A stretch of 64,000 nucleotides of DNA, from contig QPMI01000418.1 in the NCBI GenBank assembly GCA_004431415.1, positions 57,708 to 121,707 on the forward strand, given 5' to 3'. The notes beneath the pieces are model-generated. The model was given only the letters and a program-made list of their open reading frames with translations. It was not told where the DNA came from and made no database searches. Of the stretch, positions 1-50,767 are shown piece after piece. Numbering within the stretch: position 1 is the first letter of the stretch; every line of letters begins with the position of its first letter. The translations under genes and the position numbers were made by a program. This DNA comes from Cyanophora paradoxa CCMP329. Lineage: Eukaryota > Plantae > Glaucophyta.

Positions 1-1
1 A

Positions 2-2718
2 GTCTCTCCGGACGACACGGCCTCAGGCTGCCGGCGCTCTCTCCCGGAACAAGCCCGCAGCTCTCTCGCCCTCGTGGTCCCTTACACATCTTTCATGCCG
101 AACATGCCGCCCGGTTTTCTGGCCCTTTCGGAAGGCAAACTGACTCCCGCGAACCAAGATTACATCAAAGCCAACCGTGGCTACGGCAACAACTTTCTTC
201 GCGAACACCCAACTCACCCAGACCTTGGCCGGCTTAACATGAACGGGGCAGTCCCCACAATCTTCAGCGGAACTGAGCGGGACAGCCGCCGCTCTTACTT
301 GACCCAGGCAGTGGGTTTCCTGGTTCGCGCCCTCCTCACTCTCACCCGCTCTCTCCCGACGTTGACCCAGCCCCACAGCTGGAGCCCATGGGCCACTGGG
401 CTCCTGAATTCCAAGTTAAGTTGCTGGATTGGGCTGCCCAAGATCTCCCTCTCCCGGACCGCAAAAGCGCCCGCGGTGCGATCCTGGAGGACTACCGCGT
501 CTCGCTGGAAACCCAGGACGGCAAAGAGCTATACGAGTACGTGGTACGCACTTAAGCTTCTTCTCACCATTCATCACCCTCCCGCTCATCCTCCGCACGC
601 CCAGATCCGACACGTTGCCCCCGGCGGGCCCTTGCGCGCAGAGGACGGCTCCCCGGTCACCACCACGCTCGCAGAAGTCTTGACGGACTTTCAACGCTAT
701 CTCTTCGCTGTGTTCCAGGCCGGTGGTCAGACACCGGAGGCAGCCGCCCGCGCCGCTGTCAACGCTATGCACGCCCTCACGTACACCACTAAGGCCGACG
801 GTCACGAGGCCTACGTCCTCGTGGATAAAAGTACACACCGCGCACTGTGCGCAGCTGATCCAGCGGAGCAGCTCCCTCCTGCTGAGGCGGTCGTAGCCAG
901 CGCCTTCTTTCCTTCTCTTCTAGGCTGCGCCCTCTGCCTCCCGCGCGGCCTCCACTCGGACGACCACCTCCGGAGTGCCTCCTTCTCGCTTTTTATCCCT
1001 GGCTCCACTGCCCCCTCGTTTGCGGCCGTGTCGTTCATCATTCGCGCTTTACACCTCCAGGGGATTACGGTTCTCGGCACGCTCACGTCCTCCCTTCCCT
1101 CCGGGAACCCCACTCTCGTGCTAGTTTGCGCGATCGACTCCTACTCCTCGCTCCCCCCCCCGAAGCGCCGAGTCTCTTTCTCCGACGACGGCCTCGACCT
1201 TCAAGCTTTCCTTCGTACCTTTAATATTACGGTCCAAACCCTCCTTTCCGCCCATCCCTCCCTCGTACTCACTGGTACCCTCAGGGACCCGAGACCGCGC
1301 CGGTACTGGTGGACACCTACGAGATTCTTCTTGCCCCGCCGACCTCCTCCCCCCCAACAACGCTCACTTACGGCGATTTCAACCTCGAACTCACGGTCGC
1401 CCTCTCCAAATGCTGCTCTAAATGCCGCACCGGCGCGGACCCGGCCGACTGGTTCCACGGGCCCATCACATGCCGGGTACCCCCCGCTCGTCCGACCTCC
1501 CCCACCGTCCACCCTCCCTCACTCTCTCACAGGCCAAGCGTCAGCGCACATCCGACGTCATTATGGTGGCGGCCCCCCCGACCCTCGCCTCCCCGCCCGT
1601 ATCATCCCCGGTGATCGCGCGCCGCAAGGGCCGCTTCTAGTCCCTCTGACTCCGATTGTACGCGAACGTGTGTCCCCTCCTTCACGAATCTGCTTGGTCC
1701 AATACACTATTCTGGCACAGCTGCCTACTTTCCGCATTCACACAGAGCCCCCCGGCCACTACTCCGGCCGGTACACCTTACCCGAGCTCCACACCATATA
1801 TCTACCTAGAGCGACGCCGTCGGGCCCCTGCGCGCCGCTCGCCTCTCCTCCGCCCGCCCCGGTGCCGCGCGCCCTGCTGGACGCTGTCGGCCTCCCCGCC
1901 ACCCGGCGCTGCGCCCGTACTGCCGGACCTGGACCTGGAGCGACGCCGCCGCCGGGCCTCAGCGCGCCGCCCGTCTCGCCTCCGCCCGCGCCGACCCCTT
2001 GCGACCTGCACTACACTGTCAGCCCCTCCGATGCCCGGCTCTGCGCCTATGCTGACGGACCTGGATTAGCCGCGAGACCGCCGACTGGCCCCAGCACGCC
2101 GCCCGTCCCGCCTCCGCTCCGGGCGCCGCGCGATCTACAAGACGCTGTCAGCCTCTCCGCTGCCCGACTACGCGCCCGCGCTGACGGACCTGGATCTGCA
2201 GTGAAGCCGCCGCCGGGCCCCGGCGCGCCGCCCGTCTCGCCTCCGCTCGAGCCGGCGCCACCGGGCCCCCGCGCGCCTCCGGTCTCGCCCCCGCCCTCGC
2301 CGGCGCGGTGCGCCCTGCAGGACGCGGTCGGCTTCCCCGCTGCCCGGCGCCGCGCCCGCGCTGACGGACCTGGACCTGACGTGCAGCCACCGCCGAGCCC
2401 CATCGCGCCCCGCGCCTCGCCTCCGCCCGAGCCGCGCGACCTGCAGAACACTGTCGGCTGCCCCGCTGCCCGGCGCCGCGCCCGCACTGACGGACCTGGA
2501 CCTGAAGGGAAGCCGCCACCGAACCCCAGCGCGAGCCGCGCCTCGCCTCCGCCCGCGCCGTGCGACCTGCAGGATGCTGTCGGCCGCCCCGCTGCCCGGC
2601 GCCGCGCCCACACTGACGGACCTGGACCTGAAGAGAAGCCGGCGACGGGCTCCAGCGCGAGCCGAGCCTTGCCCCCGCCCGCGCCGCGCGACCTGCAGGA
2701 TGCTGTCGGTTGTCCTCG
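2..2718 (+). CDS. A0 polyprotein segment 1 (unknown N-terminal region plus start of Pro-rich repeat array); open from window start
   Basis: Frame of ORF 74..2824 has no stop from position 2. It runs into the TIR element at 2719 and rejoins the 10623 frame if 2719-10720 is removed (CG+G = Arg, then GAC). Confidence 0.6.
1850..2712 (+). repeat. Coding tandem repeat array, 120-126-bp units (PRDLQDAVGxPAARRRARADGPGPExKPPPxPSAPPVSPP)
   Basis: Recurrent GACCTGCAGGACGCTGTCGGC...GCTGACGGACCTGGACCTGA units. Confidence 0.9.
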
Positions 2719-2936
2719 CATTGTTTTTCAAATCGATTTTTTTCGCGCGGGACCGTCCCGCGCGGTAGTCCCGCGCGGGACGCCTGCCGCACCGCACGGG
2801 ACAGTCCAGCGTCTAGAACTTTGAAAGCAGTCTAGAAGTCCTGCGTCCGAGCTAGCCGCATCCCGGCTAGGCGGGTGCCGGGCACTGCCGGCAGCTGCAG
2901 CCGGCTTCGACTCCGATCCTCGGAACTTCGGAAAGT

Positions 2937-3095
2937 GGAAGGCCGCCCGCCCGGCGGCCTTCGCGGGCGCGGGACTTCGCTATTAGCGTGTAGAAGCATC
3001 ACCGGCGGCTAGTAACGCGGAAGGCCGCCCGGCCGACGGCCTTCGCGGGTGCTGCTGGACGTTGCTAGTAGCGTGTAGAAGCATCACCGGCGGCT
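2937..3095 (+). repeat. Subterminal direct repeats of the TIR element (2 copies, ~75-80 bp)
   Basis: GGAAGGCCGCCCG...GGCCTTCGCGGG...TAGCGTGTAGAAGCATCACCGGCGGCT occurs twice. Confidence 0.75.
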
Positions 3096-3282
3096 TCGAT
3101 CCGCGGCAGGCCGTGCAACGCGGGTCAGTAGCCTAGTAGCTTCTCACAGGCCTTGCTACTCGCTCAGGTGCGCAGGAAGTGCTCGCTTGACGCCCGCGGC
3201 TCAGACAGGCGGCTCGCGCAGCTCGCTGACCGCCGGAGACTCCTTCGCGAGGCACGAGCGCAGCGGCCAGCAGCCCCGCCGT

Positions 3283-4718
3283 TCGTCTGGCATCGTGCTC
3301 ACGCCCTGATTCCGTCCCCACGGAGCGCCGTGCTCGCTCGCTCGGCAGCTCTCCGCCGCGAAGATGCAGGGCCCCGTGGCCGCGCCGTGCGTCTTTCCGC
3401 GCTAGGAGGGCTTTTGATCCACCTCGTGGCTCACGTGGGTGCGCAGGGACGGTTCGGGAGGCCCCACGGCCGAGTTGACAGGATGCGCAGCTGCAGCGTT
3501 GACCGCCGTTCGCGTTCCCGCGCGCGAAGCTTCGACTCCCACAGTGCGTGGGTGTGATGTGAGCGAAGCGTGTGCAGCTCCAGTGCGTCTGTTGCCGCTT
3601 CCGGGCTGATCCGTTCTGAACCCTGCGGCTGACCAGCGGCTCGCCTCCCGCGCAGAGCTTTCGGACCTGTCGAGCGTCGACCTCGTCACGCTGATGCGTT
3701 TGGGCCACGGCGTTTGGACCGCGCCTGCCTCCGGAGGGCGGCGGCCTCAGGTGCGCGCATGCGCCGCGCGAGCCGCGCTTCGGGGCCGGCGGTCCGCGTT
3801 CGCGGCGCCTCCGTGTGCTCATGCTGATGCACGCGACTCACGCGCAGCTTCCGCGCGTCCTCCGCCGCCACGGTGCCGGCTCTCGCCTCAGGTGCGCCTT
3901 TCGAGCAGCATCGCTGCTCGCGATGATTTGGGGGCCGCGCGTGGCAGATGATGCAGAGCTAGACCGAGCTGGCGCTGCGCGGCTCCTCCTGCGGCAGCTG
4001 GCGAGCTGCGGCAGGCGATGTGGGGCGTCGGCCGCTTGGGGCAGGCGGGCTCTGTGCTTGCGCCGCGGGCTCTGCTGGCGGCGCGCGCTCAGCCTGGCAG
4101 CGGCCGCCGGTGCGAAGGTGCGGCAAGTGGTTGGGGCGCCCTCCGAGCTCCGCCCCGCACTGCTCGCCCCGCCTTCCCCGCCCCCGCCCTCATTCGCTCG
4201 TGGCGGCAGGGTGCCTCTCGCGGGGCAGGGCGGAGGCGCGGCAGGCGGCGGCGCGGCTCGCGGGCGGGGCAGAGGCGCGGCGGGCGACGGCGCCTCTCGC
4301 GGGGCGGGGCGGAGGCGTGGCGGGCAGCAGCGCGGCTCGCCGCGCGGAGCAGGGGCGCGGCGGGCGACGGCGCCTCTCGCGGAGCGGGGTGGAGGCGCTG
4401 CGGGCAGCGGCGCGGCTCGCCGCGCGGAGCGGGGGCGCGGCGGGCGGCGGCGCAGCTCGCGAGGCGGGGCGGAGGCGCGGTGGGCGGCGGCGCAGCTCGG
4501 CGAGCGGGGCGGGGGCGAGGCGGGCGGCGGGGCGGCTGGGCGGGCGGGCGGAGGAGCGGCGGGCAACGGCCACCGGTGCGAAGGTGCGGCAACTGGCGGG
4601 GCGCCGCGCCGGCGCCCTCCGAGCTCCGCCCCGCACCGCTCGCCCCGCCTTCCCCGCCCCCGCCCTCATTCGCTCGTGGCGGCAGGGTGCCTCTCGCGGG
4701 GCGGGGCGGAGGCGCGGC
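3283..4718 (+). repeat. Left arm of ~1.44-kb internal inverted repeat (partner 8817-10252)
   Basis: Mirror ORFs with identical translations on opposite strands (3133..3822- vs 9713..10465+, 3402..3689- vs 9846..10133+); coordinates sum to ~13535. Confidence 0.9.
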
Positions 4719-5257
4719 AGGCGGCGGCGCGGCTCGCGGGCGGGGCAGAGGCGCGGCGGGCGGCGGCGCGGCTCGCCGCGCGGAGTGGGGGCGCGGCGGG
4801 CGGCGGGGCTGGTCGCGGCGCAGGGCGGAGGCGTGGCGGGCGGCGCGGCGGCTCGCGGCGCGGGGCGGAGGCGCGGTGGGCGACGGCGCAGCTCGCCGCG
4901 CGGAGCGGGGCGCGGCGGGCGGCGGCGCAGCTCGCGAGGCGGAGCGGAGGCGCGGTGGGCGGCGGCGCGGCTCGGCGAGCGGGGCGGGGCGAGGCGGGCG
5001 GCGGGGCGGCTGGGGGGCGGGCGGAGGAGCGGCGGGCAACGGCCGCCGGTGCGAAGGTGCGGCAACTGGGCGGGGCGCCGCGCCGGCGCCCTCCGAGCTC
5101 CGCCCCGCACCGCTCGCCCCGCCTTCCCCGCCCCCGCCCTCATTCGCTCGTGGCGGCAGGGTGCCTCTCGCGGGGCGGGGCGGAGGCGCGGCAGGCGGCG
5201 GCGCGGCTCGCGGGGCGGGGCAGAGGCGCGGCGGGCGGCGGCGCGGCGGGCGGCGGC
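4200..5257. repeat. GC-rich GGCGG/GCGCGG low-complexity region with an internal ~200-bp direct duplication (~4550-4760 vs ~5020-5245)
   Basis: Direct reading; repeated CCCTCCGAGCTCCGCCCCGCAC...CATTCGCTCGTGGCGGCAGGGTGCCTCTCGCGGGG block. Confidence 0.8.
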
Positions 5258-7343
5258 GGCTCGCAGTGAGCATCTGATCATGAGCACCCATGCATGCAGT
5301 GCTCATGATGATCATGAGATTTGATCATGATGCCTGGAAAAGATCCCGACCTTCTAACTGACTGGCGAGGTGTACCTGGGCTATATCAAGGGTGCTGGAT
5401 TTGATTTTGATAGTGTTAACGCTGAAAAGGCGCTCTTGCCTCGCCAAGCAATAGTGGGCCCCAATTGCCAACACTTCATTTGTGCCAATTCGCAGGGCAG
5501 CACAGACTCGCAACCGTCTTAAACCGACTGCATAATCAAATCTAGCGCCCTCGAGAACCCCCAACAGCATGCTCAGGGGTGCATGCGATATGGGCCCTAG
5601 GTTTCAATATGGCTCGCAGTGAGCATCTGAGCACCCATGCATGCAGTGCTCATGATGATCATGAGATTTGATCATGATGCCTGGAAAAGATCCCGACCTT
5701 CTAACTGACTGGCGAGGTGTACCTGGGCTATATCAAGGGTGCTGGATTTGATTTTGATAGTGTTAACGCTGAAAAGGCGCTCTTGCCTCGCCAAGCAATA
5801 GTGGGCCCCAATTGCCAACACTTCATTTGTGCCAATTCGCAGGGCAGCACAGACTCGCAACCGTCTTAAACCGACTGCATAATCAAATCTAGCGCCCTCG
5901 AGAACCCCCAACAGCATGCTCAGGGGTGCATGCGATATGGGCCCTAGGTTTCAATATGGCTTGCAGTGAGCATCTGAGCACCCATGCATGCAGTGCTCAT
6001 GATGATCATGAGATTTGATCATGATGCCTGGAAAAGATCCCGACCTTCTAACTGACTGGCGAGGTGTACCTGGGCTATATCAAGGGTGCTGGATTTGATT
6101 TTGATAGTGTTAACGCTGAAAAGGCGCTCTTGCCTCGCCAAGCAATAGTGGGCCCCAATTGCCAACACTTCATTTGTGCCAATTCGCAGGGCAGCACAGG
6201 CTCGCAACCGTCTTAAACCGACTGCATAATCAAATCTAGCGCCCTCGAGAACCCCCAACAGCATGCTCAGGGGTGCATGCGATATGGGCCCTAGGTTTCA
6301 ATATGGCTTGCAGTGAGCATCTGAGCACCCATGCATGCAGTGCTCATGATGGTCATGAGATTTGATCATGATGCCTGGAAAAGATCCCGACCTTCTAACT
6401 GACTGGCGAGGTGTACCTGGGCTACTAGGCTATATCAAGGGTGCTGGATTTGATTTTGATAGTGGTTAGCGCTGAAAAGGCGCTCTTGCCTCGCCAAGCA
6501 ATAGTGGGCCCCAATTGCCAACACTTCATTTGTGCCAATTCGCAGGGCAGCACAGACTCGCAACCGTCTTAAACCGACTGCATAATCAAATCTAGCGCCC
6601 TCGAGAACCCCCAACAGCATGCTCAGGGGTGCATGCGATATGGGCCCTAGGTTTCAATATGGCTTGCAGTGAGCATCTGAGCACCCATGCATGCAGTGCT
6701 CATGATGGTCATGAGATTTGATCATGCCATGATGATGCCTGGAAAAGATCCCGACCTTCTAACTGACTGGCGAGGTGTACCTGGGCTATATCAAGGGTGC
6801 TGGATTTGATTTTGATAGTGTTAACGCTGAAAAGGCGCTCTTGCCTCGCCAAGCAATAGTGGGCCCCAATTGCCAACACTTCATTTGTGCCAATTCGCAG
6901 GGCAGCACAGGCTCGCAACCGTCTTAAACCGACTGCATAATCAAATCTAGCGCCCTCGAGAACCCCCAACAGCATGCTCAGGGGTGCATGCGATATAGGC
7001 CCTAGGTTTCAATCATTGAATATGGCTTGCAGTGAGCATCTGAGCACCCATGCATGCAGTGCTCATGATCATCGGATGGTCATGAGATTTGATCATGATG
7101 CCTGGAAAAGATCCCGACCTTCTAACTGACTGGCGAGGTGTACCTGGGCTATATCAAGGGTGCTGGATTTGATTTTGATAGTGGTAAGCGCTGAAAAGGC
7201 GCTCTTGCCTCGCCAAGCAATAGTGGGCCCCAATTGCCAGCACTTCATTTGTGCCAATTCGCAGGGCAGCACAGGCTCGCAACCGTCTTAAACCGACTGC
7301 ATAATCAAATCTAGCGCCCTCGAGAACCCCCAACAGCATGCTC
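5258..7343. repeat. Satellite-like tandem array, 347-bp unit, ~5.9 copies
   Basis: Unit starts at 5258, 5611, 5958, 6305, 6661, 7024; near-identical units, much lower GC than flanks. Confidence 0.97.
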
Positions 7344-7419
7344 TCACCCGCCGGAACGTCCCGGCAGTTTGAGCTTCGACAGGAATGTTTTATTTGAAAT
7401 ACATTTGCAATACACCACG

Positions 7420-7985
7420 CCTTCGCCCCGCCCGGCGAACCGCGCTGCCGCCCGCCTCACCCCCGCCCTGCCCAGCGAGCCGTGCCGCCGCCCGCCGCGC
7501 CCCCACCCAACCCCGCGAGCCCCGCCGCCCGCCGCGCCTCCCCCCGCCCGGCGAGCCGCGCCGCCGCCCGCCGCGCCCCCACCCAACCCCGCGAGAGGCG
7601 CCGCCGCCCGCCGCGCCCCCGCCCTGCCCAGCGAGCCGTGCTGCCGCCCGCCGCGCCCCCACCCAACCCGCGAGCCCCGCCGCGCGCCGCGCCTCCCCCC
7701 GCCTGGCGAGCCGCGCCGCAGCCTGCCGCGCCTCCGCCCCGCTCTGCGAGCCGCGCCGCCGCCCGCCGCGCCCCCGCCCCGCCCCGCGAGAGGCGCCGCC
7801 GCCCGTCGCGCGTCCGCCCGCCCGGCGAGCCAAGCCGCCGCCCGCCCGGCGAGCCGCGCCGCCGCCCGCCGCGTCGCCGCCCGTCGCGCGTCCACCCGCC
7901 CGGCGAGCTGCGCCGCCGCCCGCCGCGTCGCCGCCCGTCGCGCGTCCACCCGCCCGGCGAGCTGCGCCGCCGCCGCCGCGCCGCC
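7420..7985. repeat. GC-rich CCGCC low-complexity/minisatellite region
   Basis: Repeated CCGCCCGCCGCGCCCCC and CGTCGCGCGTCCACCCGCCCGGCGAGC motifs. Confidence 0.75.
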
Positions 7986-8645
7986 GGAGGAAGGTGCGGA
8001 GGAAGGCGGCGAGGGCGTCGAGGCGGCCGCGCAGCAGCGCCGCCATGCCCCCGAGCGCCGCCGCCATCCCCTCTGCCCGCCCCGCCTCCGTCGACCGCGG
8101 TCGACGGGAGGGGGCGGGGAGGGGGCGGGGAGGGGAGTCGAGGGCGATGCGGCGGAAGTAGCGGACGAGCTCCTCCGCGAGCGCCTCCGCCTCCGCCAGC
8201 CGCCCCTGCCCCGCCTCAGGCCGGGCCGGGCTGGGCCGGCAGGGCGGGGCGGGACGGGGCGGGGCGGGGAGTACGGTGGAGAGGAGGAGAAAGGCGTGCA
8301 TGAGGGCGGGGGCGGTGTCCCGGTTCCAGCCGCCGTAGCCCGCGAGCCGCAGCGACTCCTCCATCCACCCCGCCGCCTCCCCGAAGCTGCGCCCCGCCCC
8401 GCCCCGCTTGCCTTCGCGCCCCCGGGCCGCCGCGGCGCGCGCGGCGCGGGGCGCGCCTGACAGCAAAGCAGGAGCGGAGGACCTCGGCGTTGGAGCCAGC
8501 GGCGGGCGGCGGCGGCGTGGTGGACGGGGCCGGGGAGGGCGGCGCCGCCGGGGAGGCCGGCGCCGTCGAGGGCGTGGGCGATCTCGGCGAGGAGGCGGCT
8601 GGCCTCCGGGACGGTGCCCTGGGCGAGGGCGGCGAGGGCAGCTGC
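7985..8645 (-). pseudogene. Captured host gene fragment with two putative ~70-bp introns (helical, TPR-like peptide)
   Basis: Splicing 8387-8456 (GC..AG) and 8206-8274 (GT..AG) gives NAEVLRSCFAVSFGEAAGWMEESLRLAGYGGWNRDTAPALMHAFLLLST-GRLAEAEALAEELVRYFRRIAL; protein-like sequence amid low-complexity DNA. Confidence 0.5.
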
Positions 8646-8816
8646 TGCCCGCCCCCGCTCCGCGCGGCGAGCCACGCCGCCGTCTGCAGAGCCTCGCCCC
8701 GCCGCTCGCCCTGGCGCGAGTGGCCGCGTCGCCCGCCGCGCCCCCGCTTCGCGCGGCGAGCCGCGCCGCCGCCCGCAGATCCTCGCCCCGCCTCGCAAGA
8801 GGCGCCGTCGCCCGCC

Positions 8817-10252
8817 GCCGCGCCTCCGCCCCGCCCCGCGAGTGGCACCCTGCCGCCACGAGCGAATGAGGGCGGGGGCGGGGAAGGCGGGGCGAGCGGT
8901 GCGGGCGGAGCTCGGAGGGCGCCGGCGCGGCGCCCCGCCCAGTTGCCGCACCTTCGCACCGGCGGCCGTTGCCCGCCGCTCCTCCGCCCGCCCGCCCAGC
9001 CGCCCCGCCGCCCGCCTCGCCCCCGCCCCGCTCGCCGAGCCGCGCCGCCGCCCACCGCGCCTCCGCCCCGCCTCGCGAGCTGCGCCGCCGCCCGCCGCGC
9101 CCCCGCTCCGCGCGGCGAGCCGCGCCGCTGCCTGCAGCGCCTCCACCCCGCTCCGCGAGAGGCGCCGTCGCCCGCCGCGCCCCTGCTCCGCGCGGCGAGC
9201 CGCGCTGCTGCCCGCCACGCCTCCGCCCCGCCCGCGAGAGGCGCCGTCGCCCGCCGCGCCTCTGCCCCGCCCCGCGAGCCGCGCCGCCGCCTGCCGCGCC
9301 TCCGCCCTGCCCCGCGAGAGGCACCCTGCCGCCACGAGCGAATGAGGGCGGGGGCGGGGAAGGCGGGGCGAGCAGTGCGGGGCGGAGCTCGGAGGGCGCC
9401 CCAACCACTTGCCGCACCTTCGCACCGGCGGCCGCTGCCAGGCTGAGCGCGCGCCGCCAGCAGAGCCCGCGGCGCAAGCACAGAGCCCGCCTGCCCCAAG
9501 CGGCCGACGCCCCACATCGCCTGCCGCAGCTCGCCAGCTGCCGCAGGAGGAGCCGCGCAGCGCCAGCTCGGTCTAGCTCTGCATCATCTGCCACGCGCGG
9601 CCCCCAAATCATCGCGAGCAGCGATGCTGCTCGAAAGGCGCACCTGAGGCGAGAGCCGGCACCGTGGCGGCGGAGGACGCGCGGAAGCTGCGCGTGAGTC
9701 GCGTGCATCAGCATGAGCACACGGAGGCGCCGCGAACGCGGACCGCCGGCCCCGAAGCGCGGCTCGCGCGGCGCATGCGCGCACCTGAGGCCGCCGCCCT
9801 CCGGAGGCAGGCGCGGTCCAAACGCCGTGGCCCAAACGCATCAGCGTGACGAGGTCGACGCTCGACAGGTCCGAAAGCTCTGCGCGGGAGGCGAGCCGCT
9901 GGTCAGCCGCAGGGTTCAGAACGGATCAGCCCGGAAGCGGCAACAGACGCACTGGAGCTGCACACGCTTCGCTCACATCACACCCACGCACTGTGGGAGT
10001 CGAAGCTTCGCGCGCGGGAACGCGAACGGCGGTCAACGCTGCAGCTGCGCATCCTGTCAACTCGGCCGTGGGGCCTCCCGAACCGTCCCTGCGCACCCAC
10101 GTGAGCCACGAGGTGGATCAAAAGCCCTCCTAGCGCGGAAAGACGCACGGCGCGGCCACGGGGCCCTGCATCTTCGCGGCGGAGAGCTGCCGAGCGAGCG
10201 AGCACGGCGCTCCGTGGGGACGGAATCAGGGCGTGAGCACGACGCCAGACGA
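8817..10252 (-). repeat. Right arm of ~1.44-kb internal inverted repeat (partner 3283-4718)
   Basis: Reverse complement of 3283-4718 with few differences. Confidence 0.9.
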
Positions 10253-10720
10253 TCGCGAGCTGCTAACGATGATGCTGCACGCTGCCGGCCGAACTGCTTA
10301 CGATGTGCAAACAGACCGCCGCCCGGCCCTCCACGGCCAGCTCCGAACCGCTTACGGCATGCGACACACCACGGCCACCGAGCGACCGCTCCGATGCTTC
10401 TCCACGCTACTAGCATCCGCGGACTCCGGGAAGGCCGCCGAAGAGAGCTCCGACGAGAAGCTTGAACTTCGGAATCTGCTCAGCTAGCCGCGCTTGCGGA
10501 TCTTCGAGGCTCGGGCGCAGCACGAAACCGGAGCCGGCAGCTAGCTAGAGCCGTACGGTGCGGGACGCTGGAGGCGGCTAGACGCCCCGCGCGAGACGAA
10601 GCGCGCGGCGCGGGACTACCCCGTGGCTCTAGAAGCATTCGGAAATTTCCAAAATTCGGGACGGTACCGCGTCCCGCGCGGGACGGTCCCGCGCGAAAAA
10701 AATCGATTTGAAAAACATAG

Positions 10721-22323: not shown

Positions 22324-22341
22324 ACGCGGTCGACCTCCTTA

Positions 22342-26161: not shown

Positions 26162-26228
26162 GATACCCCCCGTGGGAAAAAAACAGGAAGGCGCCTGCCA
26201 ACCCGCCTAGCTCGCAGCGTAGCGCTGC

Positions 26229-33426: not shown

Positions 33427-33449
33427 ACGGTACCCCGAGTCGCGCGAAA

Positions 33450-33471
33450 GGGGGGGGGGGGGGGGGGGGGG
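33450..33471 (+). repeat. G22 homopolymer at the start of the family B 3' UTR
   Basis: Direct reading, ~23 nt after the stop at 33426. Confidence 0.9.
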
Positions 33472-40400: not shown

Positions 40401-43400
40401 TCCAACTCCACCTCCATCCTGAAGGAAAACGCTATATAGCTCTCCACAAAAAAGCAGCTCAACACCGCACGGCGTGCATCCTTACCCCCCACGGCCGCAC
40501 GGACTATTTTCAAGTCCCCTGTGGCCTCCCCCAAGGAGGCATCGAAGCCCCTCTCCACTGGCGCATTTTCTTCGACGCCGCTCTCACCGCCATAGAAGAA
40601 CGAGCGACTCAGTCCAATTTCGGCTACCAGCTCGGGCCGCACCGATCTGACCCTACCCGCCCCCGTTCCCCCCGCCCACCATGTCCTGGCGAACCCCTCT
40701 ACTTCCCCGCCGGTCCCTGCCCCACAGTCTCTGTGCTCGCATACGCCGATGACACCACCATGCTTGCCAGCTCGGCTCAGGGTCTCCAACATATGCTTGA
40801 CTGGTTGTCCGAATTTCTCCATATCCATGGCATGAACCTGAACGCCAAAAAGACGGAAATTTTCCACTGGAAACCCCCCCGATCCGAAGCGCCAGTCAAG
40901 AGCAAATATTATGTCGGCGTCGGCGATTCCAGAGCTGAGGTTGGCCACATCCTCTCCCCCACAACACCATTCCGCGTCCTCGGCGTACAGTTTACGGCGA
41001 ACCTGTCTTGGACCCACCAAGTCCGTCTACTCAAGTCCCAGCTCCAGTCCGCAATCTCCGTCCTAGCAGCAAAGAAGATTACCGTCCACGAATTCCAAGT
41101 GATCCTACATCGGGTTCTCTTCCCCAAACTGGCATACCCTCTCCGCATCATGACCTTAACGCCATCCCAATGCCAATCCCTCGACGCTGTCTGGCTCACC
41201 GCGGCCAAACACACGGCCAACCTGGCCCAGTCCATTTCCACGGCTGCCTTCTCTTCCATCTATCGCCTTCCCTCAATAGCTGTCATCCAACGCCAACAGC
41301 AGTGCGTCGACGAGCGCCTCCGCCAAGAACTAGCCTCTCACACATCATCACTCTACGGCCAAATATACCGACAACGTGTCCTCGACACCCAGGCCCGATA
41401 CGGGCTTCCCCTTCTCCCACACGAATATCCGAACCTTCCCTCGGGGCCCCTCACACTACAGAAAAATATTACGCTTGCCATCACGGCAGACCTGACCTCC
41501 ACCTCCCATCACATCCTCACAACGTGCGACTCCTGGACACATGGCCTCCCCTCCCGCCGCTCCCATCTTCGACGAGAATATATTATATCAACGCAATTGT
41601 CGCCCCTCACCCTCCAACAAGCCGGCCAGCGACTCTATCGCTGCGGCCTCCTCACAATCCGCGACATCACGGCCCCTGACGGCTCCCTTGCCGAATGGCC
41701 CCTCCTCTGGAGTCACGGCCGTGTCCCGGCATACTACAAACGTGCCCCCTCCTGGTGGGACGCTGTCCGCGAAGAACTCTCTCTTCCCCGCCCCTCCACC
41801 CGGTCCCCTTTCCTCCCCCGCCACCGTATGCCTCCGCCGCCCTCTATCCCAGACATTCGTCGCTCTCTCCAAGCTAATGCCGTCCTTGCGGGACTCAACA
41901 TTGGTGACTTTGTCTGGACATCCCAAGGCCTGGTCGGCCGCGTCGTGGGGAAACCCCCTATCCCAGACGAAAACCCGGACGAACTAGCCTCGGAGGACTC
42001 CGATGCGGATCCTAACTGCCCCCGAGATTCAGAGTATAACTATGGGGTGGAACTCGTCCATTACTGCCTCACCCCATATGATGGTTTCTCCATGCGCGAC
42101 CCCGGTCTATCGGCGCTTGAGCTCGACCCCGCCTGGCGTGAACGCAGACTGGAATTCCAATTTTGCCCTCACCCAAAATACTGCGGCTCTGAACAGCTTC
42201 ATCGCGAGCTGGGCCTATCTACGACTGCTTGCCGATGGGTCGAGTACGCATCTCACGTCCGCCGAATCCCGGCAGGCTCGTCGTGCGAATCGAAGGGCTG
42301 GTCTCCGAGCCTCTCCAATCTCAATAGGCCGGTGCCCACCCACTCCCGGCAACTGCCCGACTCCACCTCCGCTTTCACATGCTCCCACTCTAGAGGGCAG
42401 CAGCCCTCCCGTGCTCAACCCACACGAGCAGCTAAAAAGGCCCGCCTTGACCCCTCCTCAGCTACCCCTCCTGCTCAATATGACCCAGAACTCCCCCCTC
42501 CCAACCTCCCCCGCGAAATCACACACATTGGCTTCATCGACCTCTGGCTCCGGGAAACCGACTGGTGGGACTCTTTCCGAGCGGAGGCCCAGGCTACCAA
42601 TGTTGCCCTCGAGAGACGCCCACGCCTTATGACCCCAGCATCACAAGCCGACCGCGACTTCTATGAATCCCCGGCCGGGCTCGACTTCCTTTTCACTACC
42701 TCTCGAGCCCTTTTCGCAGAGCTCTGCCCTACACTCCGCGCACTCAACTCCCCGCCCCTTCCCTCCGGACCTACTCCCCGGGTAATATACACGGACGCCA
42801 GCACACAAAAACAGGGCTCCGCCTCCGTCCGAACCACTTACGCCGGCCTTGCACCCCTCGAAAGTAATCCCGACCTGCCTGACAAAATCGAGTTCGCCCA
42901 CCGTCTCCCCGGCGTCCAACACAACGTGAACCTGGGAGAGCTAGCAGGCACAATCTCCGCAGCATTCACGTATTTCGGGCCCACGGGCGGGAAAATTATC
43001 ACGGACAGTCAGAACACTATCCGAGCCCTGACAGCCTTCGCCTTTCAAGACCCTTCATCTTTCTCCCATCCCATCAACTTCCGCACCCTGCTCCGCCGAG
43101 AAGACGGGGCCCTTCTCCTCAACGCTCGAACGCAATACGCCATTCGTATCGCCCAAGACCCGAACTTCCAAGTCACGCTTCAGTGGGTCCCCTCTCACCA
43201 ACCAAAGACCATCCCGCGGCCACCTGCAACGGCTCAGACACCAACGACGACCCGCCGCCCGGCCCCCTCTTCCCCCCGCCGACCCCGTGTCCCCCTCAGC
43301 GGACCAGCTGCCCCCCTACCTACCGCCCCGCAGACGTTCTCTGCCTCGGCTCCTTACCACTATATTGGTGGAATGGACATCCCCGATGCCCGCCTCCTTT

Positions 43401-45364
43401 TTTCGGACGACTCCCCCCCACCCCTCCCCCCGTCCCTATTCTCGTCCCTCTTCCCGCCTCGCCGGCACATTCACACATATATTCTCGCTGACAGCCCCGC
43501 CGACTACCATTTCCTCCGATGCCAAGCGGACCTCGTTGACTATATAGACGCATCTGAGACTACCAACACCCACCTGGTCCTCGACCTCGTCCCCCTCGCG
43601 TCCGCCAGACTTGAACGCGCCTTCACGGCGGCGGAAACCGTCATCTGGAACCGCTGCATCCGACTTCCCAAGGATCATGCTCTCTTCCCCTCCGACGAAC
43701 ACCTGACCATTGTCTCGGACTGCGACATCCTCCGAGCCTACTCCGCTTTCCTTGAAGCCTTAGGACGCAGAGACATCACTCACAGCATCTCCTTCCAGTG
43801 CTGCTCCCCCCCCAACCCAATCTTCCTTCAACCACTCCCCGAGGACGCCCCTGATGTTGACTACCCTGATCCCGGGCCCACAAGGAAACTCGCCCTCGAC
43901 TATTACTTAGCCCATCCTAGGGTTTCCGGCCCCACCTGGCATTTCTACCCCACTTCCCTCTGCAAACCCGCTGTCCCCGCCGACCGTGACACGCCTCTCC
44001 CCGCCTGGTACTGGGACGAAGATCTTACACTCGCCCCCCCCTCCCCGACCGAGGCTGGCACCCCCCTGATCGCGTACCACCGTTGCGACCCTGGCATGTG
44101 GGGCGTTCCTATTTCCTCCCTGATCGCAGAACAATGGGCACGGGGACCCGCCCTGTCCTGCCCGCACTGCCACCCCACCCCCGCCCCGCCTGGCCCCCCA
44201 CCCACGTTCCCTCTCCGCGACCAAACCGGCGCCCTTCCTGTTTTATTCGAACGCTATGGACGCCGAGCCATCCCTTACTCAACTGCCATCGACCCTGACG
44301 GCCCCAGGTATGATCGCCGAGTACTTCCCCTCCTCGACGGCATAAAATCTCGCCTGGCTGCCCTTAAAGCGGCCCCTCTCTCCCTCATCGACCCCAACCC
44401 TCGGTCTGGGGCCCACCTGGCCACACCCGTTCTCCTCGCACAACCCATACCTGCAGAACCCGTCGACGCTTTCTTCAGACTTCTTCAAAACCGACAAGTC
44501 TCTTTCCGCCTGCATGCCCCGACCACCCCCAAGTGCCTCTTCCTCTCGTCCTCCCACGCAACCTCGATCCTCATGGGCACAGCCCCCACTGCCCTCTCTC
44601 TCAAGGCCCGCGCAGGCCAGCCACACCTGGACCGACCCTACGTCCCGCACCCTTTCTCCCCAACGGAATACGATTATATTCTCCTCCCCCTGCCCCCCTC
44701 TGGGTCCCGACCCTGGCGACTAGCAATCATCTCGGCCCGCCTCCGCGAAATCCGCATCCTGGACGTCACCCGCAAACCCGCCTCCGACGTCACGGCCCCT
44801 CTTAAAGACTGGGTCATCAGCTGGTGGACGGCGACTCTCCGCCCCGGCGACCCCTCCCCACGCTCGGCCTGGAAGTACGACACCAGCACCTTCCCCACAC
44901 AAGCCTGGAAAAACGTTCACACGGGTGAAGACGCTCTCTTCGTCATGACCGCTGCTGAGTTCATTGGCCGCGGTGAGGAAGTCCACCTGTATGGCAAAGG
45001 ACGGGGCCGTCCTATCCCCTTCCACGCCCCCATCTACCGGGAGCGTTGGGCGGCCGCTCTCCTTCTCCGGGACCCTGAGGTTCTCCTGGGGACAGTCCAG
45101 GCTAACGACCCGGCATTCACAACAAAACGACAGCGCATGACCCCGCGCACCAGCTCCCGCCCCTCCCAGCACACGGCAGCCAAAGCCCGCCGTCCGGTCA
45201 GACGCAAGCGAGACCCCACCCCTCCTCCCTTCCGTCCTCCCTCTCCCCCCGTCCCTTACACCGGTAACCCCCGGTCCCCAATTCCCCTCCCTCCCCCACA
45301 GCCCCCACCCCCCCCACCCTGCCCTTCCCCACCCCCACGCCCCCGGCGCCCGAGGCCCGATTAA
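34459..45364 (+). CDS. A0 polyprotein segment 4: repeat array, APE endonuclease, reverse transcriptase, RNase H (N-part), inserted domains
   Basis: 3663-aa ORF 34373..45364; in frame with segment 3 across the B TSD (SLLNCR-QFP). The stop at 45364 follows C-run frameshifts that A1/A3 read through. Confidence 0.9.
35290..36705 (+). repeat. 126-bp coding repeat array (~11 units)
   Basis: Same unit family as the earlier arrays. Confidence 0.9.
37889..38767 (+). other. APE (apurinic-like) endonuclease domain of A0
   Basis: LTWNI, ALQEVD, LSLYVP, VLGDMN, FTH, ARIDY, ADHLPV motifs. Confidence 0.92.
40060..41010 (+). other. Non-LTR reverse transcriptase domain of A0
   Basis: AIPK, LRPITLQE, NYGF, DIASAYDSV, GLPQGG, YADD (40742-40753), NAKKT, FRVLG. 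Confidence 0.96.
44380..45090 (+). other. Ulp1/C48-like pseudo-protease domain (catalytic His and Cys absent)
   Basis: PVDAFFRLL, CLFLSSS, YILLPL...PWRLAII...IRILDV, TQ...GEDALFVM, YRERW align motif by motif with the downstream domain. Confidence 0.55.
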
Positions 45365-45549
45365 CTACTTCCCCAGGCCGAACCCCCGCTCACCCGACTG
45401 AATTTCCCCTCCCTCGCCCCCTGACGCTGGCGGAGAAAAGTTGGCTGGGGAATGCCTTCCGGTTTGCAGACAATGATTACTGCGCGGAGCAAATTCTCAT
45501 GTCAAAACCCCCCCTCCCACCCGCCCCCCGACCTGACCCTCATCGTCAC

Positions 45550-46280
45550 TCCCTCATTCGACGAGGCGACCTTATCCACCTCCGGCCGCATGCCGCCCTC
45601 AGCCTCCCCCTTGTGGAAGCTTTCCTTGACAGGCTCTCCTCCCGTGAAGCCGCCCTGGCCTCGCCTCACCCTGCCTACTTCCTGTCGTCCAGCTCCTATC
45701 CCGCTAGTGCAGCCTCCCAATTTGACTCTCAGGGCTCTGCCCTTCTCCCCCTGCACCAATACCTTCCCCCCGGACGCCTTCTCGATGCCCGCCTTGTCCT
45801 TGTCCCCATCCTTACCTATCGCCCCACTCATCATACCCCACCAGCCCCCTCGCCGACCCTTCCCTCAGGCAGATCCCGGCACCCTCCGGTCCCCCCGGGA
45901 CACTGGCACCTACTCGCTTTATTTCCTCAGACGCGCTCGTTCTACATTCACAACGGCTCCCTCGACGTCCCTGATCACCTTGTCTCCTTTGCACAAGACT
46001 TGGCCGCCACTTGGAGTCACCGCGACTCTGGTTCCCCCCTCCCCCTCACTCCATTCTGCAGATGGACCTATTTACGCCCGGAGACATCCCTATCCGTTCT
46101 CCAGCCCCCCAACAGCACGGCCTGCGGCCCTCTCCTCCTCCTCACAGCCGACCTACTCAGTCGCTCCTCAGCACTTGCCCCGTCGGACTTGCCCCGCCCC
46201 CCAGCCTATATTCAGGTCGACAATGCATCGCTCCGCAGATATCGTGAATATATTGCCCTCAGCCTCTGCTACGGGTCCGT
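45550..46280 (+). other. Ulp1/SENP-like (peptidase C48, clan CE) cysteine protease domain
   Basis: DLIHLRP..LSLPLVEAFL, LVLVPI...GHWHLLAL...FYIHNGSLD...LQPPNSTACG; His codon 45901, Gln 46102, Cys 46123; retained in A1 and A3. Confidence 0.8.
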
Positions 46281-48394
46281 CACCCTTGACCCTATATGCT
46301 GTGGTCCTGCCCTCCCGGCCCTCAGACCCCCACCGACCTTCCCGGGGCGTCCCCAACCGCCACGCCGCCCCCCGGTCTCCACTGGCGGCACCCTACCTAC
46401 CCTAGACTCCCCACCATCCTCCCCCGACCACCCAGCCCTCCCGCGCTCCCCAACTGTGCTTGAGTCTACCCCGCCTCGCCCTGCAGGGCCCGCCACCCCC
46501 CTCCCTCCCGGTGCTCGCTACGCCCAAGAACTCGCCTCTCAGCTCGCTGACCTGGCCCGCAACGAAGCTTCCGCAACAGCACGCCGTCTCTTCCGGCCGT
46601 CCCACGTGACCCCACTCGAGGCGGCGACCATCCTAGCTGAAGCCGCTCACCGCGACGCCGCCCAGCCGCCACCACGGTCCGCCAAAACATCTAAAACGGT
46701 CGCAAAGAAAGAGGCGGCCCGGACTCCGGCCAAGAACCGTATCCCGAACCCAGCCTATACTCCTGACAACTGCCACAATGACGCCGTTGACAAGCTCGCC
46801 AAAACGACCCCAGACGCCCCCCTCTCAGCCCTTCTCTTCATTCCCTACAGCTTCAAATGCTTCCTCATCCGCATCGGCCTCCCGCCCCCGTCATCCCAAG
46901 GCCCAGTTCCAGGAGCCGAGCCCTACAGAGGCAGACTACATGCATACCGCGTTGAGGGGGACCCCCGCTCTCACTTCCTAGCCGAAGCCTCCCTCTCCCA
47001 ATACCTCGACTGGCGCCAGCTTCGCAACGCGGGGGCCGTCCTCAGCAATCCCCACGTTACCCTCGCCCCAGCCCTCTCCCTCGTGTCCGACAAGCCACCG
47101 GACCGCCGTACCCCCACAGGCGATCACCTCCGCAAAGTCAGATTCCAGTGCATTCTTGGAGGCCTCCCCTCCCTCACCATCCGCCTCCTCCATGACCCCG
47201 ACCTATACGGCCCTCTCTTTCCTGACGGTATCGCCCACTGCCCCTTCTGTCACCTCCCTCCCACCCCGGCCCCAGTCCCCGAGGATCCTGCTTCCCCACC
47301 CCCACCCTCCCCGCCCCCTGCCACGCTCACCCCCCCGGGCTCCCCACCGCCCCCTTCCCCACCGAGGGCCGCAGACCCCAGACAGCCCGACCCCACAACC
47401 CACCCCCCGAAGACTTCATTCACATATTTACTTGCCCCGCCGCTCGCCTCCTCCTCCAAGCTCTCCAGGACGCACTCGTGACCTTCCTCCGCACCCGGGT
47501 TCTCCGCCACTCGCCCAAACCCTTAGGACACGACGATACTATTTTTCAACTCTTTCCCTTCCTCCGCCTCGTCTCCCCTGACCCCGCCTCTCCCCTCCAA
47601 TCCGCCCTCCTCTCCCCCACTGAAAATCCGGCCCTTTTCCGCCCCCCAGGTCTCACCGATACCCTATGGACAAAGCTTAGCCCGGCCTTGGCTGACCTGC
47701 TCCCCTTCCCCGCCCCTGCCCTCCTGCGCCTCGGTACCCCGGCAGGAATGCCCGCCCTCTGCACAGCCCTGGGCATCAACAAGACCACCACAATGTCCAT
47801 CCAAAAAGATTTAGCGCTACTCCTTGACCAACACCTCCGTGCGATCTGGAGGGACCGCTGCGCCCGCAACCACGCCTGGGAGCTCCGACAAGGCATCACT
47901 GACAGAACCAAACGTCGATACCGCAAACATGCCGACACCAAACCCTCCCGCTCGCCGCCAGTACAGCCGCCTGGTCCCCCCCTCCCCCCCCGCCCCTCCC
48001 CGCCCCCTCCCTCCATGATACTATCTCCATCACTGACTTCTGCTGCGGATTGGACTCGGAAAGCCAACCATGGGTTCTCCTGGAAAATTTCCGCCAGGCA
48101 ACTGCACGACTCCCTGCCTCCCCCTCGCCCCAGACCGCCCCCTCCCCCCAGGCCCCCCCCGCCCCCCAGCCGCCCAATACCAGCACCGTAGCCATGACAT
48201 CGGACTTCTCTTGTACCTGTGGCACCCGATTTGCCTCCGCAGCTGCCCTCCAAGCCCACTCCGACGCCAGACGGGGAAAGTGCCCCGCTCGCCCTGAGAC
48301 CACCCCATACCCTAGATCTGCCTCCCAACCTGCTGCACCCCCAACGCAACCTTCTCACAAGAACCCCGACAATGGCACCCTGCCCGCTTTGCCC

Positions 48395-49557
48395 TTTTTT
48401 TTGCAAAAATGACGGTATATTGACGGCACTACCACATCAATCTACCGGACCCTTCCGAAAGTAGACAAGTCGAATCTACCCAAAACCGAAGTTTACCAGT
48501 CTGCCTCACTAACAAGTAGAGAATAGCAAGACAGCTGCCCATGGGCCCATCCTCATAAAAGGTCCTGAAAAAACAGACCTATGTACTGCGGGGAGCAAGG
48601 GTTCTCGTTTTCCGATAGCCTGCCCACGTACACCTCAGTACATAATAGCCTATATTCCAGGATGCACGAGGCATATCCCTACGAGGAGTCACGAAAGCAG
48701 GAAAGGATCTGCGAAGGAACCCAACCTCAGAGATAGACGACGAGAAAGAAAGAAACGTAGCGTCGCGCGCGTCGCCTACTCCTACTTCTATATCTAGGAC
48801 GAGAGAAAGAGAAAGGGGGACGACTGCGGGTGGCGCGCGGCGCCCCCAACTCCGCCCACGGCGACCCGCGCGGGGCCGCCGCTGGAGCGGTTTGCCAGGG
48901 GTGAGCCGCCACCTCGCGCCGCGGTTCCTCCTCCTCGAGCTCCCGCCACCAGTGCGTGAGAACCAGTCCGCCGCCGCCAGACACCTGCCCCCGATCGCAG
49001 CGCGGCCGCGGCGAGGCTCCACCGTCGCCGACCCGCTGGCGGGCGCCCCCGGGTGCCCGCAGGAGAGAGACGCGGGCCGCCGGAGGACGAGGACCCGAGA
49101 GCGGAGCAGAGAGGAGAGTCCCGGCGCCGGAGGAGACGCACAGGAGGACCCCCGCGCGGCGGAACCTCGGCGGCCGCCGGTCATCGAGAGGCCGGCGTCA
49201 TCTGGCGGGAGGAATGGTCCTACTCGCTCCGCCTCTGCCGCCTTCTCCTTTGCCGGGCGCTGTTGGATGGTGCGTCCGAAGAGCAACCTGCGCGCACGCG
49301 GAGGATCCGCCGCGCCCGGGGCGTCCTTACGCGCACGGCGTACGATCCAGGACGAGCCCAGATCGGCGCCGGACCCGCCAGGCGCGGCTGTCGATCTTTC
49401 CCGAGATTGCGCTAGCTGCCAGCGGGCGCGATGATCCCGGGCTTGCCGGAACGCCAGCAGGCTGTAGAAGACGAAGCTGCTACGCACTGTCCCCCGCGGG
49501 GTGCACAAGGGCGCCGCCAGAGGCGGCCCTCGCAACCCCGTACCCCCCCGAGGGAAT
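48395..49557 (-). mobile_element. Short poly(A) retroposon C (1.16 kb, SINE-like or 3' remnant of a related LINE)
   Basis: T8 at 48395-48402; 19-bp TSD CACCCTGCCCGCTTTGCCC at 48376-48394 and 49558-49576; absent from A1 and A3; no recognisable coding domain. Confidence 0.9.
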
Positions 49558-50060
49558 CACCCTGCCCGCTTTGCCCACGGGCCCTACGTCCGCTACTCAA
49601 CCTTCCAAGCGCCCCGCCCTAACGCCCCCCCTGGCCCCTCCCTCGAAACGAACTCGCCCTTCGCCTACCTCACGCAAACGGACAACCGATACTCCCCCCG
49701 CCCCGGCACCCAAACGCCCGTGCCCCATGACCCCTCCCCTTCCCGCCTCTGCACCCGCCCCACCCGTACATACGGCGAAAAGAAAGGCAGCCGGTCGCAA
49801 GACTCCCAAGCGCGGGACCAAAAAAGCGCGAACGGTTTCGATACCCGCTGGACAACTCACAATCACGTCCCTCTTCGCACCTGGAGTGTACAAACCACTA
49901 ACGACGCTTCCAGTAGCCGACTCTCCCCCCCCCTCCTCGCTTCAGCCGGCCCCCCCGACCGAGACCCCGCACGATGCCGCCCCGCCGCCCCCTACGGTAC
50001 CTCCCCCGGCCCCAACCGACTCACAAGTGTCGAACCCCTCGTTGACTCCGGCCAACCCTA

Positions 50061-50185
50061 TGGCTTCGGCCCTCCCATTGGCTTCGGCCCCCCCCCCGGC
50101 TTCGGCCACCCCATCGGCTTCGGCCCCCCCCCCGGCTTCGGCCACCCCATCGGCCTCGGCCACCCCTCTGGCCTCGGCCACCCCC
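50061..50185 (+). repeat. 18-bp coding microrepeat (GGCTTCGGCCACCCCATC-like), also in A1 (~15970-16100) and A3 (~52330-52445)
   Basis: Direct reading. Confidence 0.8.
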
Positions 50186-50443
50186 CCTACTCAGACCGAC
50201 CCCTCCCGACCCCTCGCGACCCGCCTCCTCTCCGCACTCCCCGCTCTCTGCGCCGCCTGTCAGTGCCCACGCTCACTCCACTCTGCCGTCCCGGCACCGC
50301 TCCCTGCCCTGCCCCGCATCCGCTGCCCACCCCCTCCCGCTGCCGCCGCCCACTCCCTCTCCTTCCTCATATCTTCCTCCTACCACCTTCTTCACCTCGA
50401 CAGAACGGGACACCGATTAATCGGGGTCCTGGGGCGCAGGTGA

Positions 50444-50767
50444 GGAGGAGGGAGGAGGCAGAGTGAGGAGGAGGAAGGGTGGCGGCGCGGCGGCAAGGGA
50501 GGGCGGCGGACTGCGAGACATTTCACTTCCAGGGCTCATGAGGGATGGAGGAGTTGATCAAGGGGTGGGCGCGCGGGCCTGGTTACGGCTATCACCGAAA
50601 ACCATGGCTCCCCCACTCAGGCGAACCTCCCATATTGAGCGACCCATGGCCGGCACCTTGCTAGCGTCTTCGGCTAGACAGATGACCGGTCGGAAGGGCA
50701 CGTCACGTAGAACATTGATACATGTGCCGTGGTGTATCAATGCGACGTCCACTTTTGCAAAAAAAAA
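50444..50767 (+). promoter_or_regulatory. Family A 3' UTR with terminal stem-loop and poly(A)
   Basis: Near-identical in A0, A1 and A3; perfect 10-bp stem CATTGATACA (50713-50722) / TGTATCAATG (50733-50742) ~15 nt before the poly(A). Confidence 0.75.

Follow-up and report, generated by a model that had tools for sequence, protein, structure and literature searches.

Long interspersed nuclear elements (LINEs) are seen as compact, intron-free elements of 3–8 kb with one or two open reading frames (ORFs), given that introns are lost when a spliced RNA is copied, and mouse L1 elements carry arrays of monomers at their 5′ ends. Among the groups described, RNase H is found in the I group (I, Tad1, LOA, Ingi, Nimb and R1), plant L1 and Dualen, and Ulp1-like proteases are found in NeSL and Utopia (PMC4640811). 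SymbioLINE-Dnmt is a LINE that carries an extra gene (PMC5890265). In this study, we analyzed a stretch of 64,000 nucleotides of Cyanophora paradoxa CCMP329 (contig QPMI01000418.1, positions 57,708–121,707 of the forward strand; hereafter the window, in which positions are counted from the first nucleotide), where an initial annotation had proposed a giant LINE with one very long ORF. We propose, with a probability of about 0.55, that a composite LINE of ~27 kb, in which accessory genes and a LINE core make up one unit, is contained almost entirely in the window.

The long frame, a genuine end of the non-LTR type (LTR, long terminal repeat) and the order of the modules, which recurs on at least two other contigs, are the parts of the initial annotation that stood. 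The upstream 15 kb is not, however, simply a LINE ORF, as it consists of separately spliced and strongly expressed genes with some of their exons and all of their stops in other frames. The proposal of one giant LINE is thus partly supported: the frame is selected, while joint movement of all the parts as one unit is putative.

One reading frame across four pieces

The upstream region includes four genes, which are referred to as p1 (g11493), p2 (g11498), p3 (g11500) and p4N (the fourth gene, P0002 here and P0007 elsewhere), and it is split into four parts by three arrays of 126/132-bp units. The pieces of the giant frame and the arrays are as follows.

1–2718, plus strand: piece 1 of the giant frame, which is still open at position 1; contains g11493 and the left part of array 1
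10721–15390, plus strand: piece 2, with the right part of array 1, g11498 and array 2
22342–26161, plus strand: piece 3, with g11500; the fourth gene starts at 25398
34459–35253, plus strand: start of piece 4, with the 3′ exons of the P0007-type gene
~1798–2718 and 10721–11426, plus strand: array 1, interrupted by an element with terminal inverted repeats (TIRs)
13821–15351, plus strand: array 2, in piece 2
35254–36700, plus strand: array 3, with about eleven 132-bp units (44 amino acids), proline-rich

It had been claimed in the initial annotation that removal of three inserts joins four ORFs in frame, and our excision by script reproduced its figures. Joining of positions 2–2718, 10721–15390, 22342–26161 and 34459–45364 gave 22,113 nt, or 7,370 codons closed by the only stop, and the frame was still open at the window start. 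Removal of a further insert (C) extended the element to at least 26,335 bp up to the poly(A), also as annotated. Upstream of the APE endonuclease lie 14.65 kb, or 4,884 codons of the giant frame, in agreement with the >4,800 codons claimed. In the annotation, the joined frame runs to the stop at 45364; this end is not that of the family, as two related copies, A1 and A3, read past it and the host copy (i.e., the element in the window that carries the inserts) has a derived frameshift or a consensus error there. The family ORF extends to ~48.2 kb, which corresponds to a total of ~8,300 codons.

The joined model was translated in the script for the stop counts, and the searches and folds described below used the separate pieces. 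Over the same letters, the remaining two sense frames contained 124 and 192 stops and the antisense frames 119–281, and the longest open run in any of these five frames was 586 codons. None of the 13 introns, the off-frame exons or the linkers has a stop in the giant frame. Over the 9.75 kb outside the annotated in-frame exons (i.e., introns, off-frame exons, linkers and arrays), the giant frame had 0 stops vs. 53 and 85 in the other two frames. When the arrays and probable coding linkers were left out as well, ~1,350 codons remained with 0 stops, where 18–35 were expected.

The frame was considered as a by-product of GC-rich, C-skewed and stop-poor sequence together with the choice of excision points. 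The DNA is 60–80% GC, open runs of 200–586 codons exist in other frames, the joint at the TIR element has no target-site duplication (TSD) to fix it, and stop-free alternative frames have been noted for this genome (PMC6704402). Such a by-product is nevertheless at odds with the many stops in the other sense frames over the same letters, with two joints that are fixed by TSDs and one that is seen uninterrupted elsewhere, and with an array phase that is held across all joints. On the stop counts in other frames and outside the in-frame exons, we rejected chance, to which we assign next to no probability. The giant frame is far beyond chance and, on the basis of the stop counts, the array phase and the indels in multiples of three among copies, it is held open by selection. 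The stop-free run suggests one very long unspliced RNA that is read end to end.

The elements inserted into the host copy, whose removal restores the frame or the 3′ region, are listed below.

2719–10720, no strand: TIR element insert of 8.0 kb with ~47-bp inverted ends (2 mismatches); not part of the LINE
15391–22341, minus strand: A1, a 5′-truncated copy of the same LINE family that starts with poly-T; includes one TSD copy
26162–34458, plus strand: B, an 8.3-kb LINE of another family with APE and reverse transcriptase (RT); includes one TSD copy
48395–49557, minus strand: C, a 5′-truncated LINE tail of a related family, with a 19-bp TSD at 48376–48394 and 49558–49576

A1 is flanked by an exact 17-bp TSD (CGCGGTCGACCTCCTTA) and B by an exact 15-bp TSD (CCTCCTTAACTGCCG). 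The boundaries of A1 and B are thus fixed independently of the frame, yet removal of both restores the frame. The joint at B is found uninterrupted in the gene model P0007 (tig00020952_g16491) of another contig, where the protein reads ...SLLNC-R-QFPYA..., and in RNA contigs the 15 letters before B are directly joined to the 15 letters after it. No recognizable TSD was found at the ends of the TIR element. Its joint is supported by the TIRs themselves, by units of the same array in one codon phase on either side, and by p1 and p2 adjoining as g14649 and g14650 on contig tig00020849.

We noticed that the target sites of A1 (15374–15390) and B (26147–26161) have the motif CCTCCTTAA in common, which suggests similar endonuclease target preferences. 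A1 corresponds to the host copy from position 42602 to the tail with an identity of 95.9%. B has matches to APE (48 bits) and RT (67 bits), followed by ~4 kb with ORFs on both strands, and the tail of C (poly-T, then GCAAAA...) resembles that of the A1 family, from which C otherwise differs. The TIR element contains subterminal inverted repeats of 1.6 kb (3269–4873 vs. 10264–8650, 97%), 5.8 units of a 347-bp array (5281–7343) and 40-bp GC-rich arrays; its two longest ORFs had no Pfam match. On both sides it is flanked by ~21 nt of the array unit (unit positions 6–26), which are diverged.

All 34 array units are in one codon phase, and this phase is kept across all three joints. Variability among the units at the three codon positions is 0.20, 0.25 and 0.26, with no concentration at the third position, which indicates that the frame and its openness are kept and that the peptide sequence is not. 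Among the copies found in DNA contigs, all five indels in 36251–37560 are multiples of three, so that array 3 and the stretch before APE lie in an ORF in the multi-copy set too. Arrays 2 and 3 have 598 bp in common at 97.5% (14473–15070 vs. 35778–36375), while other pairs of units are 75–85% alike; this suggests recent exchange between arrays of one element. The possibility that array 3 is an AUG-free leader was rejected, given that it contains 5 ATGs where 6.5 would be expected.

The LINE core and its copies

The recognizable LINE part is confined to the last ~13 kb, which include APE, RT, RNase H, a poly(A) and truncated copies flanked by TSDs. This part is a genuine non-LTR element. Its features and those immediately downstream are as follows.

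36701–45364, plus strand: LINE core ORF in the giant frame, with a pre-APE stretch, APE, RT, RNase H and a long post-RNase H stretch
37904–38710, plus strand: APE (PF03372, profile positions 1–218 of 225, E = 3.2e-4; a weak match of 21.0 bits, with the cut-off at 24.5)
40091–40993, plus strand: RT (PF00078, E = 6.5e-18, 65.6 bits, cut-off 29.6)
42782–43201, plus strand: RNase H (weak Pfam match)
45268–47478, plus strand: ORFb, continuation of the family ORF, in another frame in the host copy
47226–48188, plus strand: ORFc, continuation of the family ORF, in a further frame in the host copy
49577–50767, plus strand: 3′ untranslated region (UTR) and poly(A), without codon-position signal; short poly(A) at 50759–50767
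51743–64000, minus strand: A3, a second core copy that matches host positions 37235–50765; cut by the window end

In Pfam, APE, RT and RNase H were matched in the last piece of the giant frame only. The best solved-structure matches to the RT in a PDB sequence search were R2 proteins (E about 1e-6), not L1, and the ESM Atlas returned generic RVT_1 clusters only. No Rfam family was matched anywhere in the window. The host tail at 50757–50767 reads GCAAAAAAAAA, and the 3′ flank begins with GCGTACTGGCGCGC.

Comparison of the host copy with A3, to which it is 88.6–89.4% identical depending on the stretch compared, revealed differences of ~0.05, 0.03 and 0.25 at the three codon positions of the giant frame over 37.8–45 kb. 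This excess at third positions continues past 45364, first in the frame of ORFb and then in that of ORFc, to ~48 kb, and indicates that the core evolved as a working gene under purifying selection. A1 and A3 each have a net change of +1 (modulo 3) in the C-rich segment 45241–45339, and both are open where the host copy stops (45362–45364). Given that A1 is the sister of the host copy relative to A3, the host stop is either a derived frameshift or a consensus error in a C run.

Relative to the host copy, one-base deletions number 38 in A1 (in 6.9 kb) and 30 in A3, mostly in runs of at least three C; they may be long-read consensus errors or reflect damaged source copies. A1 is nested in the host copy and thus a later arrival, yet the host copy has no frameshift in 22 kb. 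PacBio reads corrected with Illumina data underlie the published assembly of C. paradoxa, for which genes were predicted with BRAKER/Augustus and RNA-seq hints (PMC6704402). The C-run deletions in A1 and A3 follow a pattern that is also given by long-read consensus errors, and the frameshift before 45364 also sits in C runs, as might be expected if the long-read contig were an assembly chimera whose open frame is an effect of consensus polishing. Contigs from independent short-read runs, in contrast, match the window exactly over array 3 and reproduce the p3–p4N junction, and gene models on two other contigs are in the same order. Such a chimera is thus very unlikely.

In the region of ORFb and ORFc, at ~47209–47441, the usual C-terminal zinc motif of LINEs seems to be split into CPFC (ORFb frame) and H-x4-C-P (ORFc frame), between which the frame changes and ~190 nt of proline-rich sequence intervene. 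The split could result from the loss of one nucleotide (A3 has +1 at 47402) or from an intron. By eye, ORFb also has a pattern, H-W...S-L-D...Q-x5-A-C-G, that resembles the triad of Ulp1/C48 proteases, and a degenerate look-alike of this pattern is found in the post-RNase H stretch at 44700–45000. As this likeness was seen by eye only and neither Pfam nor PDB gave a match, an Ulp1-type protease in ORFb was rejected. No signal of a restriction-like endonuclease (RLE) was found with Pfam in the post-RNase H stretch or with Pfam and PDB in ORFb and ORFc, searches in all of which a divergent RLE could escape detection, and no PD-(D/E)xK pattern was seen by eye.

Spliced upstream genes and copy numbers

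The upstream 15 kb contains four intron-containing genes with 13 short GT..AG introns of 50–75 nt; the mean intron of the Cyanophora genome is 86 bp, its GC content is 67.6% and LINEs account for 2.47% of it (PMC6704402). Four gene models are 100% identical to the window (P0009 = tig00020571_g11493, P0003 = g11498, P0001 = g11500, and P0002), which places the window in contig tig00020571 of the published assembly, and according to P0008 the first gene begins ~98 codons before the window start. The genes are arranged as follows.

239–322 and 605–1231, plus strand: exons of g11493 (P0009) in the giant frame
379–543, 1285–1476 and 1533–1640, plus strand: exons of g11493 in the other two frames
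11748–13536, plus strand: g11498 (P0003), with a CCHC-like motif at 13398 and a 58-nt intron at 13470–13527, followed by an off-frame stop
22551–24316, plus strand: g11500 (P0001), with a CCHC-like motif (24183) and, ahead of an off-frame stop, a 50-nt intron (24255–24304)
From 25398 across the B site, plus strand: fourth gene (P0002/P0007 type), with an off-frame stop at 35029–35031
~34475–34529, 34558–34619 and 34879–34934, plus strand: introns of the fourth gene, from RNA contigs only

The splicing of the fourth gene was observed directly: GT..AG joints of its 62- and 56-nt introns were found in the two RNA runs and were absent from the two DNA runs. In all four genes, the stop is off the giant frame. 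Three of these stops come directly after an intron that is not a multiple of three in length; the fourth is located in an exon that earlier introns of this kind put off-frame. In g11493, the introns are 56, 61, 53 and 56 nt long, and the CCHC-like motif and the stop are both off the giant frame. In g11498 and g11500, after the intron directly behind the motif, another frame is read for two or three codons up to a TGA. These two are paralogues with an identity of 27–34% (BLAST vs. profile alignment) and an intron position in common, and both end in C-x2-C-x13-H-x5-C; three of the four genes end in a CCHC-like motif.

Off-frame exons number three in g11493 and two in the p4N gene. Those of g11493 look like ordinary protein and are conserved on tig00020849 about as well as the in-frame exons, and their reading in the giant frame is rich in S, R, T, W and P. 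An excess of C over G is found in the unique parts of the upstream region (skew of −0.29 to −0.41) and in the core (−0.29 to −0.43), and is missing from B, C, the TIR element and the flank; the common skew of the upstream region and the core fits one history.

Neither the giant-frame pieces nor the spliced models of the upstream proteins had a match in Pfam, the PDB sequence search or the ESM Atlas, and a metagenome scan with the module alignment returned no relative. The folds predicted by AlphaFold2 were poor, with a mean predicted local distance difference test (pLDDT) score of 35.5 for the p3 module (7 sequences) and 30.6 for the p1 product (2 sequences). Profile comparison of p1 with the p2/p3 module revealed no relation beyond a short CxxC stretch.

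Under the proposed reading, the 3′ 13–14 kb would be a LINE core that is large yet normal, in which a 132-bp array is followed by APE, RT, RNase H, a long C-terminal extension that bears CCHC motifs, a 3′ UTR and poly(A), and the 5′ 15 kb would hold the four intron-containing accessory genes, separated by two more copies of the array. The unspliced RNA would contain one uninterrupted frame from the first gene to the RT and would serve as template and also as the mRNA by which ribosomes get to the RT. Splicing of introns that are not multiples of three would bring the off-frame stops into play and so give separate small proteins. Core-only copies would result from 5′ truncation at array 3 or would have started within it. 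That splicing works as a switch in this way, with an unspliced ORF of ~8,300 or more codons avoiding premature stops and giving RT in cis and the spliced RNAs giving four accessory proteins, is suggested tentatively, as we rate its chances a little below even.

The upstream genes recur together elsewhere. On tig00020849, p1, p2 and p3 are found in the same order (gene models g14649, g14650 and g14652) with identities of ~80%, 72% and 97%, and tig00020952 has a p3 module and a p3–p4N gene (g16489 and g16491) with 98%; this order, which covers the upstream genes only, was read from gene-model numbering and sequences. A query with the 1,801 amino acids of APE-RT found no gene models in its length range. 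Divergence of the tig00020849 copy (P0003/P0004 and P0001/P0005) is mosaic, with 28% in p2, ~20% in p1 and 3% in p3. The uneven identities of p2 and p3 point to exchange between copies.

Depth was obtained from assembled contigs, and summed contig depth should be taken as a rough guide and not as copy number. One contig of DNA run X1 (depth 45.5) is identical to the window and spans array 3 without differences. The summed depth in this run is 117–175 over 34459–35258, ~385–480 in array 3 over its first divergent units, and 530–1,500 from 36.7 to 40.4 kb, where the profile is flat; DNA run X14 has the same step. Twelve contigs of X1 match the window from 35398 on and diverge before.

These results bear on an alternative in which the mobile element is the core of ~13–14 kb only and the upstream 15 kb is a separate family of ~3 copies, consisting of host genes or another element, that was multiplied by segmental duplication or gene conversion and not by retrotransposition of the whole unit. 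The alternative accords with the depth step from ~3 to ~15–20, the flat depth of the core and the contigs that diverge before 35398, as well as with the abundant spliced mRNAs of the upstream genes, which end near 35050, before array 3. The divergence among p2 and p3 is uneven, as expected from gene conversion. The core-only alternative gives, however, no reason for ~1,350 stop-free codons of introns, off-frame exons and linkers in exactly the frame of the RT, for upstream main exons that share the frame of the LINE, or for the hiding of all gene stops off-frame, so that the stop-free introns and linkers, the common frame and the hidden stops are left unexplained. In addition, the upstream DNA has the strand skew of the core. 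An old passenger would not be expected to have a core that, like that of the host copy, is intact over 7.4 kb and close to A1, which was active recently. We consider the core-only alternative possible and less likely than the composite LINE.

Several observations weigh against the composite LINE. Upstream and core copy numbers do not match, as contig depth, rough as it is, has a step near array 3; this suggests ~3 copies of the upstream part vs. ~15–20 of the core, many of which seem to start at array 3, so that most LINE copies may have their 5′ start there. Full copies beginning near the endonuclease had been named in the initial annotation as a finding that would speak against its giant element, and the flat depth from 36.7 to 40.4 kb and the divergence of contigs before 35398 point that way. 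RNA contigs have a depth of 300–990 over the spliced fourth gene and of 2–6 over APE/RT (a difference of ~100 times); none covers 35059–35658, and no long unspliced transcript was seen among them. Since some exons are off-frame, part of the product of reading through would be nonsense. A conserved peptide encoded by the arrays was rejected, as they have no constraint at the amino-acid level. The host copy is damaged by the frameshift before 45364. The 5′ end of the whole unit and its TSD are outside the window, and A3 is cut at host position 37235.

Comparison with known systems

Our literature search found no LINEs of this size, no LINEs with functional introns and no Cyanophora LINE families. 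The suggestion in the initial annotation that the element is possibly undescribed accords with this search, which found nothing like it. To our knowledge, the composite element would, if real, be the longest LINE and have the longest LINE ORF. If a LINE of ~27 kb retains 13 working introns in four accessory genes within one open frame, it would extend the limits known for the size, coding capacity and expression strategy of non-LTR elements. It would also allow a direct test of the balance between spliced message and unspliced template, which has so far been tied to retroviruses and LTR elements. In the published gene set, the accessory genes are entered as ordinary genes of the host. If only the core were mobile, the strict avoidance of stops in introns and intergenic linkers would still need explaining.

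The core is similar to I-group-type LINEs in having a probable APE, an RT and an RNase H followed by a Cys/His motif, a poly(A), TSDs of 15–19 bp and 5′-truncated copies, and the upstream genes have CCHC-like ends, as do many ORF1 proteins. It differs from them in its length of 13–14 kb and in an ORF of at least 7,370 (probably ~8,300) codons, compared to 1,000–1,500. Four spliced upstream genes in one frame are found here instead of a single intronless ORF1, and the spacing of the CCHC motifs (C-x2-C-x10–13-H-x4–5-C) is not that of the gag-type knuckle.

Dualen/RandI of Chlamydomonas are likewise large algal LINEs with one long ORF that contains APE, RT and RNase H (PMC4640811). Their defining RLE was not, however, found here by Pfam, PDB search or eye, so that the comparison is by size only, and the unit in Cyanophora is about twice as long and has spliced upstream genes.

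The ~130-bp tandem units at what may be the 5′ end of most core copies, which vary in number, resemble the monomers of mouse L1. In contrast to those monomers, the units described here are multiples of three, in phase with the ORF and free of stops, and two further arrays are located between the upstream genes.

SymbioLINE-Dnmt, NeSL and Utopia provide precedent for unusual extra coding capacity, and ORFb resembles Ulp1 by eye. The additions in those elements are intronless domains or the replacement of a single ORF1, whereas the element of Cyanophora has four spliced genes.

With retroviruses and LTR elements, the proposed element would share the use of unspliced RNA as genome and polymerase message and of spliced RNAs for other proteins, as judged here from frames and splice sites. 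It differs from them in having no LTRs, no gag-pol-env and no integrase, and its insertion is by target-primed reverse transcription.

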